From Obrimoposthia wandeli (taxonomy: Eukaryota), in the NCBI GenBank assembly GCA_977020255.1, contig CDROCS010003593.1:62001-126000 (forward strand): a stretch of DNA of 64,000 nucleotides. Reading direction: 5' to 3'. The translations under genes were made by a program, and so were the position numbers. This document shows, piece after piece, positions 23,789-63,078 of this stretch (position 1 is the stretch's first letter; every line of letters starts with the position of its first letter). The notes under the pieces are model-generated. The model saw only the letters and a program-made list of their open reading frames with translations. It ran no database searches and was not told the DNA's origin.

Positions 23789-25168
23789 ATGATGAATATA
23801 GAGGATTATAAAAACATCTATTTTGTAGGAGTTGGAGGTATTGGGATGAGTGCTATTGCACGATATTTCAAAGCTATTGGGAAAAATGTGTCTGGTTACG
23901 ACAAGACACAAACTTTGCTTACTGGGGAATTAGAAAAAGAAGGTATTGATATTATTTTCAGCGATGGTGTTGATATAATTCCAGAGATTTATCTCAATAA
24001 AAGTGAAACTCTAGTGGTTTATACACCTGCTATTCCTTCAATTCATGAGCAATTATCTTTTTTCAAAAACGAGAATTTCCTTTTGATGAAAAGAGCCCAA
24101 GTTTTGGGGTTCTTATCTGATCCATTAAATGGAATTGGTATTGCCGGCACACATGGAAAAACAACTGTATCGAGTCTAACAGCTCATATATTCAAAACTT
24201 CAGCTCTAGATTGCAATGCCTTTTTAGGTGGTATTGCAAGAAATTACAACACCAATCTACTCCTGTCAAAAACGAGTCCATGGGTGGTTTTAGAAGCTGA
24301 TGAGTTTGACAGATCATTTCTTCAACTTCACCCACAGGTCGCTGTAGTAACATCAATGGATGCGGATCATTTGGACATATATGGTAAAAAAGAAGAACTG
24401 GAAAAAACATTTCAAGACTATGTCAGACAAATCAAAAAAGATGGTCACCTAATTTATAAGAAAGGTTTACCATTAAACCCAGCAGGTATCAATCTTTATT
24501 CATATTCCTTAGAAGATGAAGAAGCTGATTTCTATGCAAAAAACCTTAAGCTAGTTCAAGGTTTATATCAATTTGATTTGGTATACCCAGAGGGTTGCAT
24601 TGAAGGCTTAAATCTTTCATATCCGGGTCGAATAAATGTTGAGAATGCAATTGCTGCTAGTGCTGTCGCATTAATTTGTGGCATTAGCGAAGATGAACTT
24701 CGATCAGCATTAAATAGTTTCTTGGGGGTTAGACGAAGATTTGATTATAGGATTAAGAGCGATAACTTAGTTTTTATTGATGATTATGCACATCACCCTA
24801 AAGAACTATGGGAAAGCATCTCATCGGTTAAAGCTATCTATCCAAATAAAAAAATAACGGGAATTTTTCAACCTCATCTTTATACAAGAACACGCGATTT
24901 TGCAGATGGTTTCGCAGAAAGTTTAGATCTATTAGACGAACTAATCTTACTCGACATTTACCCTGCCAGAGAACTTCCGATAGAAGGTGTTGACTCGAAC
25001 CTTATTCTTAGCAAAATGAAAAAGAAAGGTAGAATTTGCACAAAGGAAGAATTAATTAAAGAAATTGAACAGAGCGAAATAGAAGTATTATTAACTTTGG
25101 GGGCAGGTGATATCGACAAGCTAGTTAAACCCATAGAACAGGTTTTGAATCAAAGAATAAAATGCTAA
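23789..25168 (+). CDS. murC: UDP-MurNAc:L-Ala ligase MurC
   Basis: GVGGIGMS, GTHGKTT, EADEFD, DDYAHHP, FQPH. Confidence 0.97.
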   Translation: MMNIEDYKNIYFVGVGGIGMSAIARYFKAIGKNVSGYDKTQTLLTGELEKEGIDIIFSDGVDIIPEIYLNKSETLVVYTPAIPSIHEQLSFFKNENFLLMKRAQVLGFLSDPLNGIGIAGTHGKTTVSSLTAHIFKTSALDCNAFLGGIARNYNTNLLLSKTSPWVVLEADEFDRSFLQLHPQVAVVTSMDADHLDIYGKKEELEKTFQDYVRQIKKDGHLIYKKGLPLNPAGINLYSYSLEDEEADFYAKNLKLVQGLYQFDLVYPEGCIEGLNLSYPGRINVENAIAASAVALICGISEDELRSALNSFLGVRRRFDYRIKSDNLVFIDDYAHHPKELWESISSVKAIYPNKKITGIFQPHLYTRTRDFADGFAESLDLLDELILLDIYPARELPIEGVDSNLILSKMKKKGRICTKEELIKEIEQSEIEVLLTLGAGDIDKLVKPIEQVLNQRIKC

Positions 25169-25890
25169 AAAAAATCAAGCCCATATTAATCACTCTGGCA
25201 TTATTTGCCTACATCATTTTCACTTTCGCTTTTGTGAATACGAAAAGTGATGCCATACTGGTTACAGGTATTGATATCAATATTACTGATAGCTTAAATA
25301 CGCATTTCATTTCCGATTCTGAGATCAAAAATCTCATATTAAAGAATCATCCAGGCATAATTGGTAAGCAAGCCACAAAAATAAATAAAGAGCAACTAGA
25401 ACGTGTGATAAACAAAATTCCATCTGTAAAAAACACAGAGGTTTTCACCTCACTAAAAGGCTGCTTACATCTCGAAATTGAACAACGAAAACCAGTTGTT
25501 CGATTACTAAAAGGGAAAGGGTTTTATATTGATGAAGAAGGTAGACGAATGCCGCTATCTTCTAACTATACCTCAAGAGTTTTGGTTGTGTCTGGGCACA
25601 TAAAAGACAAGACGATTGAAAGCGAACTAATGCCACTGGTGAATTTTATTACAAAAGATGAATTTTGGTCTTCGCAAATCAATCAAATCTATGTAGATTC
25701 GAATAATGAATACATTTTAATACCTAGAGTAGGCGGACAGAAAATTGAGATGGGGGAAATTGATAATTTCGAAAGGAAATTTGACAAGCTCTATGCATTA
25801 TACAAAGATGGGTTCTCAACAGTGGGTTGGAACAAATACAAAAAGATAAATTTGAAATACGAGAATCAGATCGTATGTACAAAAAGATAA
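25162..25890 (+). CDS. ftsQ: Cell division protein FtsQ
   Basis: Between murC and ftsA; N-terminal TM, POTRA-like region, INLKYENQIVC end. Confidence 0.88.
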   Translation: MLKKIKPILITLALFAYIIFTFAFVNTKSDAILVTGIDINITDSLNTHFISDSEIKNLILKNHPGIIGKQATKINKEQLERVINKIPSVKNTEVFTSLKGCLHLEIEQRKPVVRLLKGKGFYIDEEGRRMPLSSNYTSRVLVVSGHIKDKTIESELMPLVNFITKDEFWSSQINQIYVDSNNEYILIPRVGGQKIEMGEIDNFERKFDKLYALYKDGFSTVGWNKYKKINLKYENQIVCTKR

Positions 25891-25894
25891 TAGG

Positions 25895-27145
25895 ATGATC
25901 AACACTAACGAAATTATAGCGGCTATAGATATTGGTACAACTAAAATTGTTGCCATAGCGGGGAAAGTTACATCCAACGGAGAACTTCAAATACTTGGAC
26001 TACAAAAAACAAAATCGACAGGTGTAGTTAAAGGCGTTATCCAAAACATTAACCTCACAATTGAAGCCATTCGTGAGGTAATAGAAAAATTACAAGAAAA
26101 TACAAATATTAAAATAGATAAGGCATACGTTGGTATTGCCGGACAACATATTAGAAGCTTAAAAAACCGTCAGTTTAAATATATACAAAACGATTCAGAA
26201 ATTATTACTCAAGAAGATATTGATACGATTATAAAAGAAAATTTCAGAATTCCAATTCAAGTTGGCGAACAAATTCTTCACGTTATCCCACAAGATTATG
26301 TAGTTGATAAAGATAAAGGAATTACTGACCCTCTTGGAATGGCTGGACGCAGACTTGATGGTAACTTTAATATCATTATTGGAAGAACAGCATCAGCTAG
26401 AAATATTGAAAACTGTGTTAAAGCTGTTGATATTGATATTGAAGAACTTGTTTTAGAACCTCTAGCCTCATCTCTAGCAGTTTTAACTCCTGAAGAGAAA
26501 GAAGCTGGCGTTGTACTTGTTGATATAGGTGGTGGAACCACAGATATAACACTCTATTTCGATGGTGTTCTTCGTCACACAGCTGTTATTCCTTTTGGAG
26601 GCGATGTGGTAACCAAAGATATTAAAGAAGGATGTCATCTTTTATTAAAACAAGCAGAAGCATTAAAAGTACAGTTTGGTGAATCTGTTGAACAATTAGC
26701 AGATAACGATAAAGTGGTCAATATTCCACGAACAGGAGGATGGGATCCCAAAGAGATCGCATTTAAAACCCTTGCACAGATTATTCAGTGCCGTATGGAA
26801 GAAATCTTAGATCGTGTGAAATATCAAATTGACATGACGCCTTATGGTGACAAACTAGGTGCTGGAGTTGTACTGACTGGTGGTGGAGCCATGCTTAAAA
26901 ATCTAGATATATTAACGAGGGAAAAACTAGGCGTAGATGTTAGAATTGGTTATCCCAATGCATCAGGTCTAATCAAGGTTGATGAAGCAATTAATATTCC
27001 AATGTATGCAACAAGTATTGGTCTACTATTGAATGGCTTGAATAAGTTACAGCACAGACCAAGTGACGCTATTACGAACCAAGCAAATACTAAAACTAGG
27101 AAAAAGGGAATAAAACGTTTCTTTGAAACACTCTTCGATAACTAG
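25895..27145 (+). CDS. ftsA: Cell division protein FtsA
   Basis: IDIGTTK, VDIGGGTTD, VLTGGGA; amphipathic C-tail KKGIKRFFETLFDN. Confidence 0.96.
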   Translation: MINTNEIIAAIDIGTTKIVAIAGKVTSNGELQILGLQKTKSTGVVKGVIQNINLTIEAIREVIEKLQENTNIKIDKAYVGIAGQHIRSLKNRQFKYIQNDSEIITQEDIDTIIKENFRIPIQVGEQILHVIPQDYVVDKDKGITDPLGMAGRRLDGNFNIIIGRTASARNIENCVKAVDIDIEELVLEPLASSLAVLTPEEKEAGVVLVDIGGGTTDITLYFDGVLRHTAVIPFGGDVVTKDIKEGCHLLLKQAEALKVQFGESVEQLADNDKVVNIPRTGGWDPKEIAFKTLAQIIQCRMEEILDRVKYQIDMTPYGDKLGAGVVLTGGGAMLKNLDILTREKLGVDVRIGYPNASGLIKVDEAINIPMYATSIGLLLNGLNKLQHRPSDAITNQANTKTRKKGIKRFFETLFDN

Positions 27146-27253: not shown

Positions 27254-28567
27254 ATGATTGACGATATACTACCTGTTGATTTCGAAACAAAAGAAGAATC
27301 AATAATTAAAGTTATTGGTGTTGGAGGCGGTGGAAGTAACGCTGTCAATCACATGTTTAAAGAAGGTATTAAAGATGTTGGCTTTGTGATATGCAATACC
27401 GACTCGCAAGCTTTAGTGGATAGCCCGATTCCTTTAAAAATACAATTGGGTAAAAGTCTAACGGAAGGACGAGGAGCAGGCAACAAACCTGAAAAAGGTA
27501 GACAATCAGCCATAGAAAGTATAGATGATGTCAATAAACTTCTTGGAGAAAAAACCAAAATGATTTTCATTACTGCCGGCATGGGTGGAGGAACTGGTAC
27601 AGGTGCAGCTCCAGTAATTGCCGAGCTTGCTAAAGAGAGAGGTATACTTACCGTTGGAATTGTAACCATTCCTTTCCTATTTGAAGGGCAACGTAGAGTT
27701 CAACAAGCATTAGAAGGCATAGAGAATTTAGAGAAACATGTAGATGCCTTATTGATCATCAACAATGAAAAATTAAGAAGCATGTTTGGCGACTTAAAAC
27801 TTTCAGAAGCTTTTGCTCAAGCCGATAGTGTTTTATCAATTGCTGCCAAATCTATCGCCGAAATCATTACAGTTCATGGCTATGTAAATGTCGACTTTGC
27901 TGATGTAGAAACAGTAATGCGTAACTCTGGAGTTGCCATTATGGGATCAGCTAGCTTATCTGGTGAAGACAGAGCAATTAAGGCAATTAAGCAAGCTCTT
28001 AATTCACCATTATTAAACAGCAATAATATCTATGGTGCACGTAATATTCTACTAAATATCATATCAGGTACCGAAGAAGCAACCATGATGGAGGTTACTG
28101 AAATTACAGAATATGTTCAGGCAGTTGTAGGAAACGATGTTAGTATTATATGGGGGAATGGTTATAGCGAATCATGCAATGATGAGTTGAGCGTAACTAT
28201 TATAGCAACAGGTTTTACTGATAATCCAATTCCAGAGCTAAATATCCAGCCTCGCCAACATGAACAAAATAAGGAACCTCAGCTTGAATTAATAATTGAA
28301 AATCCAGAAATGCTAGAGACCGAAGCTAACAATTCAAAAAGGAAGGTTTCGTCTACAAAAATGAACAACACAAACCAGACAGAAATGTTTGAGGAATCAT
28401 TTGAAGAGGAAAATGTAACTAAGAGCAATGAGGATACAACACCTGATAACAGGTCGAATGATTCTTATACTGCTCCTAAGAAAAAAGAGGTAGTAAAGGA
28501 AAAGAAATCAGGTTGGTTCAAAGACACTCTAGGTTCATTATTCGATACCGAAGATACATCTATGTAA
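27254..28567 (+). CDS. ftsZ: FtsZ paralogue 1 (no recognisable core C-terminal peptide; FtsA-like tail)
   Basis: GVGGGGSN, GRGAG, AGMGGGTGTG, T7 loop NVDFADV; ends SGWFKDTLGSLFDTEDTSM. Confidence 0.95.
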   Translation: MIDDILPVDFETKEESIIKVIGVGGGGSNAVNHMFKEGIKDVGFVICNTDSQALVDSPIPLKIQLGKSLTEGRGAGNKPEKGRQSAIESIDDVNKLLGEKTKMIFITAGMGGGTGTGAAPVIAELAKERGILTVGIVTIPFLFEGQRRVQQALEGIENLEKHVDALLIINNEKLRSMFGDLKLSEAFAQADSVLSIAAKSIAEIITVHGYVNVDFADVETVMRNSGVAIMGSASLSGEDRAIKAIKQALNSPLLNSNNIYGARNILLNIISGTEEATMMEVTEITEYVQAVVGNDVSIIWGNGYSESCNDELSVTIIATGFTDNPIPELNIQPRQHEQNKEPQLELIIENPEMLETEANNSKRKVSSTKMNNTNQTEMFEESFEEENVTKSNEDTTPDNRSNDSYTAPKKKEVVKEKKSGWFKDTLGSLFDTEDTSM

Positions 28568-28573
28568 ATTAAT

Positions 28574-28664
28574 AGCTTGGAAATACACACTATCTCCAAG
28601 CTTAAAGTTTCATTTAGAAAATCTTAATTAAAATAAGGTCGTAATTAATTAAGCATTACATTTG
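28574..28664 (+). promoter_or_regulatory. Hairpin after ftsZ1 plus TAnnTTTG promoter for ftsZ2
   Basis: agcttgga/tccaagct inverted repeat at 28574-28602; TACATTTG at 28657-28664. Confidence 0.6.
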
Positions 28665-28736
28665 CATCGCAAAAAGGTTAAATACGATAGAATACAATCA
28701 CACACATCCAACAAGAGGATAAATACAATAGAATTA

Positions 28737-30011
28737 ATGAGCGAGGAATTAATGGATTTTGGCTTGATAGAAGACGAACCTTCAATTATTAAAGTAATTG
28801 GAGTTGGTGGTGGTGGAGGCAATGCTGTTAACTACATGTATCAGCAAGGCATCAAAGATGTTGATTTTGTCATCTGTAATACGGATGCACAAGCATTAGC
28901 AAAAAGCAGTGTGCCAAAGAAAATTCAACTTGGAGAATCTTTAACAGAAGGACGTGGAGCTGGTAATAAGCCTGAAAAAGGTGAACAATCAGCTATAGAA
29001 AACTTAGATGATGTTATTGAAGTATTAGCAGATAATACCAAAATGGTATTTATTACAGCTGGTATGGGTGGAGGTACCGGAACTGGTGCTGCTCCAATCA
29101 TTGCTAAGGCTGCAAAAGACATGAATATTCTTACTGTTGGTATTGTAACTATCCCTTTCCGTTTCGAGGGTAGGCAACGTATCAATCAGGCAGTAGAAGG
29201 TATAAGAAAACTTAAAGAAAATGTCGATTCACTTCTTGTAATCGATAATGGAAAACTTTCTGAAATATATGGCGATCTTAAACTATCAACAGCATTCTCG
29301 AAAGCTGATGACGTTTTAGCCACAGCAGCAAAAGGGATTGCTGAAATTATAACACTACATGGTTACATCAATGTTGACTTCGAAGATGTTAAAACCGTGA
29401 TGACAAATAGTGGTGTTGCTGTTATGGGATCAGCAAGTGCAGAAGGTGAAGGAAGAGCAGTAACTGCTATTCGAGAGGCATTAACCTCTCCTCTACTTGA
29501 CAATAACGATGTTCGTGGAGCAAAATCTATTCTTCTGAATATCACATCTGGAACCGAAGAAGTGACAATGGATGAAGTCGGTGAAATCACCGATTATGTC
29601 TATGAAGCAGTAGGTGATAGTGGAAATATTATTTGGGGTACTGGGCAGGATGAAGCTTTAGGTGATAATATTTCTGTAACTATTATTGCTACTGGTTTTG
29701 AACATGACGAATCAGAAAATTACGATACAAGACCTCAACAAGCTGTTATAAACAAACCGAGTGCTTTTAAAGGAGGTAAAGGTCCAGCTAAAACAACCGA
29801 AACTCAAAATTTACAATTGGAGTTAGATCCTGTATCTGAACCAGAAGCTAAGCGAAATGTAAAACTAGATGCTAGTAACATGAACGATGCGGAGATTCAG
29901 GAAAATGAAGAAATTCCAGCATATAAGCGTAAACAAATCAATTTACAGAGAACCGAACCTCCAAAAACATCCAATGTGGTTCATTTCGATTTAGATGATT
30001 TTGATAATTAA
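28737..30011 (+). CDS. ftsZ: FtsZ paralogue 2 (canonical, with core C-terminal peptide)
   Basis: Likely start is ATG 28737 (MSEELMDF); the ORF-track TTG lies inside the -7 box. GVGGGGGN, AGMGGGTGTG, NVDFEDV; EEIPAYKRK. Confidence 0.95.
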   Translation: MSEELMDFGLIEDEPSIIKVIGVGGGGGNAVNYMYQQGIKDVDFVICNTDAQALAKSSVPKKIQLGESLTEGRGAGNKPEKGEQSAIENLDDVIEVLADNTKMVFITAGMGGGTGTGAAPIIAKAAKDMNILTVGIVTIPFRFEGRQRINQAVEGIRKLKENVDSLLVIDNGKLSEIYGDLKLSTAFSKADDVLATAAKGIAEIITLHGYINVDFEDVKTVMTNSGVAVMGSASAEGEGRAVTAIREALTSPLLDNNDVRGAKSILLNITSGTEEVTMDEVGEITDYVYEAVGDSGNIIWGTGQDEALGDNISVTIIATGFEHDESENYDTRPQQAVINKPSAFKGGKGPAKTTETQNLQLELDPVSEPEAKRNVKLDASNMNDAEIQENEEIPAYKRKQINLQRTEPPKTSNVVHFDLDDFDN

Positions 30012-30068: not shown

Positions 30069-30515
30069 ATGACTTTATTAGAACAAATAAACAGTGACAT
30101 GAAGGCTGCAATGAAAGCCAAAGATAAAGAGAGATTGCAAGCTATTAGAGCAGTAAAAACAGCTTTCACTCTTGAAATGACAAAAACAGGTAGTACTGAG
30201 ATTGCCGACGCTGATGCTTTAAAAATTGTACAGAAACTTGCTAAGCAGAGAAAAGATTCTGCCGATACATTTATTGCAGCTGACCGTCAAGAGTTGGCTG
30301 ATGTTGAACTACATGAGATGTCAGTTATTGAAGCTTATCTTCCAGCACAGATTGGTGATGAAGAACTAACTGAAATTATCAAAGGTTTGGTTGCGAAAAC
30401 TGGAGCTAGCTCTATTAAAGATATGGGTAAAGTTGTTGGTATGGCATCTAAGGAATTAGCTGGTCGTGCTGATGGGAAAACCATTGCAGATAAAGTGAAA
30501 GCTTTACTAGCTTAA
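30069..30515 (+). CDS. GatB/YqeY domain protein
   Basis: DMKAAMKAKD, KQRKDS, YLPAQ, KDMGKV, GRADGK. Confidence 0.93.
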   Translation: MTLLEQINSDMKAAMKAKDKERLQAIRAVKTAFTLEMTKTGSTEIADADALKIVQKLAKQRKDSADTFIAADRQELADVELHEMSVIEAYLPAQIGDEELTEIIKGLVAKTGASSIKDMGKVVGMASKELAGRADGKTIADKVKALLA

Positions 30516-60309: not shown

Positions 60310-63078
60310 TTAGACTACTATATTTACGATTTTCTTAGGGACAATGATCACCTTTTTAGGGGTTTTACCATCAATCCATTTCTGGGCCTGTTCACAAGTC
60401 ATCACGGCCTGTTCTATTTCATCTTTACTCAGACTTAACGAAAGCTCAAGTATGAATCTCATTTTCCCATTAAATGACACAGGATATGAGTAGACATCTT
60501 CAACTAAATACGATTCATTAAAGACAGGGAAAGTCGCATCGGTAATACTATTGGTATTTCCACACAGCTTCCAAAGTTCTTCAGTAACATGAGGTGCAAA
60601 AGATGCTAACAGAGTAAGTAGTTCTTCTAAAATTGCTTTCTTATTACACTTCGCACTATTCAGCTCATTTACACAAATCATAAATGCCGAGACTGACGTA
60701 TTGAATGAGAAACGTTCAATATCATCTTGAATCTTCTTAATGGTTTTATGTAGTATTTTATATTCAGCCTTAGTTGGTTCATCTGTTGAAATCACGAATT
60801 CATTCTGATCGTTATGGAATAAACGCCACAACTTCTTCAAGAATTTATGAACACCATCAATTCCATTAGTATCCCAAGGTTTTGATGCCTCTAATGGTCC
60901 TAAGAACATCTCATACAAACGAAGTGTATCTGCACCATATTCATCAACAATCACATCAGGATTAACCACGTTAAACATCGATTTCGACATTTTCTCTACA
61001 GCCCAACCACAAATGTATTTACCATCTTCCAATACAAATTCTGCATCAGTATACTCAGGCATCCAATTTTTGAAAGCTTCAGTATCTAAAACATCGTTTT
61101 TAACGATATTTACATCAACATGAATTTGAGTCGTATCGTGATCTTTTCTCAAACCATATGACACATATTTGTTGGTATTCTTAATACGATAAACAAAGTT
61201 TGAACGACCTTGAATCATACCTTGATTAATCAATTTCTTGAAAGGCTCATTCTTACACACTTTACCTATATCGAAAAGGAATTTATTCCAAAAACGTGAA
61301 TAGATCAAGTGACCAGTTGCGTGCTCAGTACCTCCAATATACAAGTCTACATCTTGCCAATATTCATTTACCTCCTCAGATACCAACGCGTCATTATTAC
61401 GAGGATCCATATAACGTAAATAATAAGCTGATGAACCTGCAAAGCCAGGCATGGTATTCAACTCAATAGGATAACCATCTTCAGTCGTCCAATTTGTTGC
61501 ACGTCCCAATGGTGGCTCACCTGTTTCGGTTGGTAAATATTTATCAACCTCAGGTAACTCAAGAGGCAATTTATCTGCATCCATCATTTGTGGCATACCA
61601 TCCTTAAAATAAACCGGGAATGGTTCACCCCAATAACGCTGACGAGAGAAAATAGCATCACGCAATCGGAAATTGATTTTACGCTTACCTAATCCTCTTT
61701 CTTCAATTTCAACATTTGCTTTTACAATAGCATCTTTAACATCCAGGCCATTCATAAAATCTGAATTGATCATCTCACCAGATTTTGCATCGTAAGATTC
61801 TTCGCTAATATCACCTCCTGATACAACAGGTACAATTGGCAAATCGAATTTCTTTGCAAAAGCGTAGTCACGACTATCATGAGCAGGAACGGCCATGATA
61901 GCACCTGTTCCATATCCAGCCAAAACGTAATCACTTATCCATACAGGAATTGCTTCTCCTGAAAATGGATGTATAGCATACGAGCCTGTAAATTCACCAC
62001 TAACCGTCTTAACATCGGCCATACGTTCTCTTTCAGTACGCTTTTTAGTAGCTGCAATATAAGCTGCAATTTTTTCTTTATATTCTGGAGTTGTTAATTG
62101 ATCTACTAACTCACTTTCTGGAGCCAAAACCATAAAACTAACTCCGAAAATCGTATCAGGTCTGGTTGTAAAAACCGTCATACGTACATCAGAATCCTTC
62201 ACCATGAAGTCCATCTCTGCACCTTCTGAACGACCAATCCAGTTACGCTGAATTTCTTTTAACGAATCAGTCCACTCAAGACTCTCCATATCTTCAAGTA
62301 AACGCTTTGCATAAGCAGATACTCTTAGAGACCATTGACGCATTTTTTTCTGCTCAACAGGATAACCTCCACGAACAGATAAACCATCTTTAATTTCATC
62401 ATTAGCAAGCACAGTACCCAACTGAGGACACCAGTTCACTAAAGTATTCGCCAAATAAGCTAAACGGTAATTTAATAGAATAGTATCTTGCTCTTTTTCA
62501 TTTAGAACATTCCACTCCTCAGCCGTAAAAATATCTTCTTGAGAAGTAGCAGCATTAACACCTGCATTTCCCTTAGTTTCAAATTCAATTACCAAATCAG
62601 AAATAGCTTCAGCTTTTTGAGTTTTACTATTGAAATAATGTTTAAACATTTCAATAAAAGCCCACTGAGTCCATTTGTAATATTCAGGATCAGAAGTACG
62701 AACCTCTCTATCCCAATCGTAAGAAAATCCAATTTTATCTAACTGCTGACGATATCTTTTGATATTTACTTCAGTCGTTATAGCAGGATGTTGTCCCGTT
62801 TGAATCGCATATTGCTCAGCAGGTAAACCATAGGCATCGTAGCCCATTGGGTGCAATACATTAAAACCTTTTAAACGCTTATAGCGAGAGTATATATCAG
62901 AAGCAATATAGCCAAGTGGATGACCAACATGTAATCCAGCACCCGATGGGTAAGGGAACATATCGAGAACATAAAATTTTGGTTTACTTGTATCAACATC
63001 AACTTTATAAGTCTTGTTATCAACCCAAAACTTCTGCCACTTTTTTTCTATTTCTTTAAAATTGTATTCCATGTTCAA
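60310..63078 (-). CDS. leuS: Leucyl-tRNA synthetase
   Basis: [43 protein letters not shown]. Confidence 0.98.

Follow-up and report, generated by a model that had tools for sequence, protein, structure and literature searches.

Why would a bacterium keep two ftsZ genes side by side at the end of its division and cell wall (dcw) cluster? The question is raised by a 64,000-nucleotide stretch of DNA (hereafter the window; positions 62,001 to 126,000, forward strand, of contig CDROCS010003593.1 in assembly GCA_977020255.1, deposited as Obrimoposthia wandeli), in which ftsA (25895..27145, + strand, 416 residues) is followed on the same strand by an upstream paralogue, ftsZ-1 (27254..28567, 437 residues), and a downstream paralogue, ftsZ-2 (28737..30011, 424 residues). 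Rings made of two FtsZ proteins are ascribed to archaea and plastids, and a single FtsZ to bacteria, in PMC11285052. A survey of the FtsZ family lists few bacteria with two ftsZ genes and places the additional copy outside the dcw cluster (PMC9871819), whereas the extra copy described here lies inside it, between ftsA and ftsZ. The nearest named relatives of ftsZ-1 belong to Ancylomarina species (80–90% identity), followed by Marinifilum (65–69%), and we assign the window contig to an Ancylomarina (Marinifilaceae, Bacteroidota). The answer that we propose, tentatively and with a confidence somewhat short of even, is that an ancient duplication made a natural chimera of FtsZ and an FtsA tail, which would anchor itself and co-polymerize with canonical FtsZ in a family-wide, two-component Z ring.

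Both genes of the window appear to encode genuine FtsZ proteins. Each product carries the Pfam domains Tubulin (PF00091) and FtsZ_C (PF12327), each has the GGGTGTG motif and the T7 synergy loop (N.DF.D), and each exceeds the curated cut-off of the NCBIfam ftsZ equivalog TIGR00065 (295.2 bits), with 359 bits for ftsZ-1 and 370 bits for ftsZ-2. The motifs are retained beyond the window: GGGTGTG is found in 50 of 50 upstream and 42 of 45 downstream copies, and N.DF.D in 48 of 50 and 45 of 45, respectively. The best matches of ftsZ-1 among solved structures are bacterial FtsZ (E 6e-87), and its AlphaFold core is modelled with a predicted local distance difference test (pLDDT) score mostly of 85–97. 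The two cores align without gaps, 202 of 312 residues being identical (65%, E 5e-129), and the two tails do not align to each other. The ftsZ-1 core is up to 69% identical to single-copy FtsZ cores, which makes it as close to them as ftsZ-2 is. A preliminary description of this locus had reported two full-length, diverged ftsZ genes with intact motifs and unrelated C-terminal tails at the dcw end; the open reading frames (ORFs) and the Pfam and equivalog matches agree with it. As for the clean frames that it also reported, the intactness of both genes stood, and the start of the second gene did not, being moved from TTG 28662 to ATG 28737. By the measures above, ftsZ-1 is classed as an FtsZ by its core, which is normal and, to judge by its motifs, GTPase-competent, and as atypical in its tail.

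The difference between the copies lies at their ends. In model bacteria, a C-terminal peptide docks FtsZ onto FtsA and further partners. The single-copy FtsZ proteins of the order and the phylum carry two end motifs, namely this C-terminal peptide, with the pattern E-x-I/V/T-P-A-Y/F-K/E-R, and then a phylum-specific terminal motif. In the window, a conserved peptide of the P-x-F/Y-x-R/K type is found in ftsZ-2, as IPAYKRK (29907-29936, + strand), and not in ftsZ-1, the core of which is followed by a disordered linker of ~95 residues. A loose regular expression for the peptide matches none of the 50 upstream copies, as against 44 of the 45 downstream ones and 24 of 28 single-copy genes, and at every multi-copy locus the downstream gene retains the peptide and the upstream gene or genes are without it (44 of 45 by this expression). 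By its end, ftsZ-2 is identified as the canonical Bacteroidota FtsZ of the pair. The second end motif, of the N-S-F/Y-L-H-D-N-V-D type, was read from the single-copy FtsZ of loci L028-L032, L049, L056-L057 and L102-L109 and lies 25–35 residues past the FtsA-binding peptide. In Ancylomarina and Marinifilum, ftsZ-2 has a degenerate form of this motif (29973-30008, + strand, in the window); one large clade of the family lacks it in ftsZ-2, and it is replaced in Bacteroides, Prevotella and the Petrimonas group.

The C-terminal tail of ftsZ-1 (residues 417-437; 28502..28564, + strand) runs from two lysines through a W/F-rich motif to an acidic end with M as its last residue. Upstream copies in general end in this way, a W-F/L...F/L...F-D/E motif standing between a basic run and an acidic stretch, the latter often closing in M, and FtsA tails share with them the basic run, the hydrophobic motif ending in F-D/E and the acidic end, often with the final M. 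Between the copy-1 tail of Ancylomarina and the FtsA tail of Marinifilum, 9 of the last 13 residues are identical, the final M included. We scored FtsZ tails against a profile of the last 28 residues of FtsA from 25 single-FtsZ genomes, that is, from genomes without copy 1. The median for upstream tails was 8.2 bits, 52% of them scoring higher than 8 bits, and the window ftsZ-1 tail reached 10.3 bits; no downstream tail (median -0.7 bits) and no single-copy tail (median -0.1 bits) exceeded 8 bits, and only about 0.2% of 625 shuffled tails did (median -0.2 bits). Smith-Waterman comparison with FtsA tails gave a similar picture, upstream tails averaging 21.2, downstream tails 14.9 and shuffled ones 15.7 +/- 1.3. 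No conversion or co-evolution of the FtsA and FtsZ-1 tails within a genome was seen in these scores (21.5 against FtsA of the same genome and 21.2 against FtsA of others), and since the former are no higher than the latter, there is no sign of ongoing conversion. Among 35 ftsZ-1 orthologues, W421 and F430 are nearly invariant. Taken together, the profile and alignment scores indicate that ftsZ-1 ends in a module matching the C-terminal tail of FtsA.

This arrangement extends far beyond the window. In a copy-number survey of the family, of the kind that the preliminary description had called for, an FtsZ match was obtained in 94 of 97 species-representative genomes and at least two matches in 93 of the 97, complete chromosomes included; the matches were adjacent wherever coordinates were given. 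The tandem pair is adjacent at all 17 Ancylomarina, Marinifilum and Marinifilaceae loci, and the same pair occurs in two Prolixibacteraceae metagenome-assembled genomes (MAGs) and one Mariniphaga MAG. In an even sample of the order (301 genomes), FtsZ was found in 294 genomes and at least two copies in only 21, 14 of which were inspected; 11 of the 21 were fetched from outside the family, and all of these carry tandem copies. The gene immediately before the copies, on the same strand, is ftsA at 45 of 46 multi-copy loci. Three tandem ftsZ genes follow ftsA in four genomes of the order (G131, G271, G386 and G171; three-copy loci L090 2636-6864, L091 2627-6856, L092 2695-6915 and L093 2460-6974). 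Judged from this distribution, the two-FtsZ feature spans the family and predates it. The differentiated, two-FtsZ state put forward in the preliminary description has gained support in several respects: the pair is family-wide, the GTPase motifs are kept, the copies are under purifying selection (see below), and the C-terminal motifs are partitioned between them. Three findings take that proposal further: the reach and age of the feature, the FtsA-like tail of the upstream copy, and the canonical nature of the downstream one.

Some loci depart from the simple pair. The three-copy genomes have two copies with FtsA-like tails of differing sequence and one canonical copy; in trees, the first copy groups with the upstream copies of Prolixibacteraceae and the second with another upstream clade. 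In the Mariniphaga MAG (L043 7316-8687), the downstream ftsZ is broken into two overlapping ORFs, and three genomes of the family (G093, G087 and G076) have one in-frame stop in the upstream copy; sequencing errors, or the occasional decay of a copy, may explain these cases. By its GTDB placement, the family probably also includes the gut genera Odoribacter and Butyricimonas.

How the pair arose can be addressed by trees and by the order of its parts. FtsZ trees (quick IQ-TREE and FastTree) do not resolve the backbone and distribute the upstream-type copies over four to six clades, and all 23 upstream copies of the family form one clade in the FastTree analysis. When all 39 upstream-type copies were constrained to one clade, the log-likelihood was 24 higher than that of the free quick tree (p-AU, approximately unbiased test, 0.84), so that one clade is not rejected, and a single old duplication followed by losses is mildly favored. 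The origin would be one tandem duplication with breakpoints before the ftsA tail and in the ftsZ linker: a duplication of this extent yields, in the order observed, an intact ftsA, an ftsZ core that has acquired the FtsA tail together with its stop codon, and an intact ftsZ. The gene order and the tail of ftsZ-1 probably point to such an event, the duplicated segment reaching from just before the ftsA tail into the ftsZ linker.

Both copies are being maintained. Among Ancylomarina species and among Marinifilum species, the ratio of nonsynonymous to synonymous substitution rates (dN/dS) is 0.04–0.11 for copy 1 and 0.02–0.09 for copy 2, values that indicate that strong purifying selection holds both of them. 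Within copy 1, the linker has a dN of about 0.22, as against 0.02 for the last 22 residues in most Ancylomarina comparisons. Both genes are represented in contigs of three metatranscriptome libraries (about 90% identity to the window), and two of these contigs connect the end of copy 1 to copy 2; they are consistent with transcription of both genes in relatives of the window organism.

The spacer between the genes (28568..28736, + strand) appears to hold signals of its own. We aligned it in eight Ancylomarina-like sequences: the first 50 nucleotides past the ftsZ-1 stop are free to vary, positions T108, A109 and T112-G115 are invariant, and a leader of ~70 nucleotides up to ATG 28737 is nearly invariant. 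The invariant positions belong to a TAnnTTTG box (28657-28664), which we take to be a putative Bacteroidota -7 promoter element, and the segment 28657-28736 is likely to constitute a putative internal promoter with a regulated leader for ftsZ-2. The same alignment bears on the start of ftsZ-2, which had been placed at TTG 28662 (ORF 28662-30011): because ATG 28737 and the leader before it are conserved, and because the stretch 5' of this ATG contains insertions and deletions that are not multiples of three, we rejected TTG 28662 and placed the start at ATG 28737. A terminator between the copies was also considered and rejected; its candidate hairpin (28574-28602) came from the minus-strand scan only and is not conserved in Ancylomarina spacers.

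What the FtsA-like tail might do is suggested by FtsA itself. The FtsA tail of Escherichia coli, Bacillus subtilis and Thermotoga binds the membrane through an amphipathic helix, and, to our knowledge, the C-terminal amphipathic tail is the membrane-targeting sequence in all FtsA proteins studied so far. By analogy with these proteins, the target of the tail would be the inner membrane, reached via an amphipathic helix. The cores of FtsZ-1 and FtsZ-2 would co-assemble in one Z ring, in which FtsZ-2 subunits would be tethered via FtsA and FtsZ-1 subunits would bind directly to the same target as the FtsA tail. That FtsZ-1 anchors directly to the membrane by its FtsA-like tail is a proposition on which we regard the chances as evenly balanced. 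The division ring may thus be partly self-anchoring.

Several observations weigh against this scheme. Membrane binding is a prediction by analogy, for the ftsZ-1 tail and likewise for the FtsA tails of Bacteroidota. The AlphaFold model gives the ftsZ-1 tail a pLDDT of ~40, with a helix of only seven residues (421-427). The hydrophobic moment of the window ftsZ-1 tail is moderate (0.45) and is equalled by half of its shuffles, and the mean of upstream tails (0.56) compares with 0.64 for FtsA tails and 0.80 for the FtsA tail of the window (last 14 residues, 27101-27142, + strand), in which a basic stretch precedes a hydrophobic-periodic tail. The last nine residues of the tail are acidic, with a mean net charge of -2.5, which disfavors binding to anionic lipid. 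As to origin, the unresolved backbone of the FtsZ trees allows one duplication without proving it, and a trace of the duplication at the DNA level was not found, none being expected at such an age. The contigs from RNA libraries come from relatives, give neither level nor strand, and may be DNA carry-over. As proof of an amphipathic anchor, the hydrophobic moment is not decisive, the window tail not being above its shuffles; the same measure also scores the MinD helix low.

The alternative that survives best takes the tail shared by FtsA and FtsZ-1 for a short linear motif that binds a lineage-specific protein partner, and not for a lipid anchor: the two proteins would dock on, or compete for, one common partner, for example a regulator, an adaptor of a protease or a membrane protein of the divisome. 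It is the conserved acidic end common to FtsA and copy 1 that gives this explanation room. The two tails have more in common than amphipathicity: across lineages, both proteins have the conserved F-D/E and then an acidic stretch, often with a D-T/A-x-M end, and the only moderate hydrophobic moment and acidic end of the FtsZ-1 tail also speak for a partner motif. However, the amphipathic tails of FtsA elsewhere are generally known as membrane-targeting sequences, the basic run ahead of the tail is a feature of lipid-binding tails, and the loci examined hold no linked gene that could be proposed as the partner. We consider a partner motif unlikely, though deserving of serious attention.

A more distant alternative is that FtsZ-1 has left division and forms a separate structure for cell shape, filament or curved-rod growth, or stress response, on the model of the accessory FtsZ-like proteins of some alphaproteobacteria and of archaeal CetZ. 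Without the C-terminal peptide, FtsZ-1 cannot use the usual partners of FtsZ, and the promoter-like box before ftsZ-2 would permit separate expression of the two genes. Nevertheless, ftsZ-1 is part of the dcw cluster, flanked by ftsA and ftsZ-2, at 45 of 46 loci; its core is as near to single-copy FtsZ as that of ftsZ-2, and its score lies above the ftsZ equivalog cut-off. In addition, the lineages of the family apparently span genome sizes of 1.8–6.7 Mb and varied habitats, so that no single morphology goes with the pair. We judge such a role outside division improbable.

The last alternative, an assembly artefact or a recent redundant duplicate heading for loss, could appeal to the mixed assembly with many bacteria from which the window was drawn, and we give it practically no credence: it is ruled out by the 65% identity of the copies, the tandem pair in 93 of 97 family genomes with complete chromosomes among them, the strong purifying selection on both copies, and contigs of other runs that bridge the junction. 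One such contig, from run X1, spans 28520-28852; contigs of an independent-looking run, possibly the source sample, join the copies at about 98% identity. The source assembly itself comprises 1.35 Gb in 6912 contigs, one of which bears the window. Its FtsZ matches number 27, on about 25 contigs, and some of these are read through TGA codons; at least 25 FtsZ genes besides the pair lie on other contigs, and two adjacent ftsZ genes are found on the window contig only. The assembly is therefore taken to combine a host with its microbes or to be mixed in some other way, the Ancylomarina contig being just one of its many passengers.

Returning to the chimera of an FtsZ core and an FtsA-like tail, its two aspects, dual-FtsZ rings and self-anchoring FtsZ, are each already known separately. 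The plastid pair FtsZ1/FtsZ2 of the green lineage (PMC11285052; PMC3494859) likewise consists of two paralogues, one of which keeps an adaptor-binding peptide that the other has lost. In plastids, the adaptor is ARC6, bound by the C-terminal motif of FtsZ2, a part that FtsA is presumed to play here, and FtsZ1 has a short C-terminal motif of its own with weak direct membrane binding (PMC11285052). The plastid pair serves one ring, whereas co-polymerization of the present pair is a proposal. The plastid genes are nuclear-encoded and unlinked, whereas those described here stand in tandem among the dcw genes of a bacterium. In plastid FtsZ1, the motif forms an amphiphilic beta-strand (RR/KLFF), whereas the novel tail here matches the adaptor's own tail. 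In Odinarchaeota (PMC12583498), tethering is also split between FtsZ1, which binds the membrane directly by an amphipathic helix, and FtsZ2, which SepF recruits via the C-terminal tail of FtsZ2. That helix is N-terminal, the duplication stems from the archaeal ancestor and the genes are not in tandem, whereas the pair described here is bacterial, relies on a tail at the C-terminus and occurs only in part of one order. The long-term joint retention of two paralogues, one with and one without the adaptor-binding motif, holds here as it does in the plastid and archaeal type.

Self-anchoring also has natural and engineered precedents. Mycoplasma FtsZ (10.1101/2023.08.29.555414) resembles our proposal in being a bacterial FtsZ with its own terminal amphipathic helix, for which membrane binding has been proposed or shown; it differs in being a single copy, without a canonical partner copy, in wall-less bacteria, and its helix is not reported to be FtsA-tail-like. 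The engineered FtsZ-mts (10.1101/079533; PMC5979038), in which mts denotes a membrane-targeting sequence, has the same design of FtsZ core, linker and amphipathic tail replacing the adaptor-binding peptide, and with it FtsZ assembles on membranes in vitro without FtsA. That construct is man-made and carries the MinD helix, whereas ftsZ-1 is natural and conserved, has an FtsA-type tail, and occurs alongside FtsA and a canonical FtsZ. Full-text literature searches returned no report of tandem ftsZ in Bacteroidota or in the genera concerned. A dcw-embedded, family-wide bacterial pair, the extra copy of which carries the adaptor's own tail, appears to be new and undescribed.

The whole family and related lineages thus keep an extra FtsZ, in some cases two, within the dcw cluster, and the two classical C-terminal functions are apparently divided between the copies. 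If the FtsA-like tail does anchor FtsZ-1, the protein would be a natural version of the FtsZ-mts used in reconstitution, and the ring would be a bacterial counterpart of the plastid FtsZ1/FtsZ2 ring. It would also offer a tractable bacterial system in which to study how a treadmilling ring responds to the density of its membrane tethers and to the stoichiometry of subunits held by FtsA and subunits that anchor themselves, and how tail exchange sub-functionalizes a cytoskeletal duplicate. For annotation, the distinction matters as well, both genes being at present called simply ftsZ.

Further FtsZ-like genes were met elsewhere in the phylum. The other multi-FtsZ genomes in a sample of 401 genomes of the phylum were set aside as a different phenomenon, their paralogues being dispersed on other contigs at 30–40% identity; four genomes of 2.1–2.8 Mb in this sample (G528, G540, G608 and G459) have two to three FtsZ-like genes on separate contigs, with 30–48% identity to the query. 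A Candidatus Azobacteroides MAG (L055 5944-9009) has an ftsZ duplication of its own, in which the second copy (395 residues) is a long-branch sister of the first and has neither the C-terminal peptide nor an FtsA-like tail.

In the window, the end of the dcw cluster occupies 21.5–30.5 kb on the + strand and comprises ftsW, murG, murC, an ftsQ-sized ORF, ftsA, the two ftsZ genes and a yqeY-like gene. The ftsQ-sized ORF (25162-25890, 242 residues) stands at the usual position of ftsQ and overlaps the end of murC by seven bases; it had no match among Pfam and NCBIfam families at E 0.001. The ftsA product scores 356 bits against TIGR01174 (ftsA) and carries the Pfam domains FtsA and SHS2_FTSA. The last gene of the cluster is the yqeY-like gene (30069..30515, + strand), which matches Pfam YqeY with E 7.7e-45.

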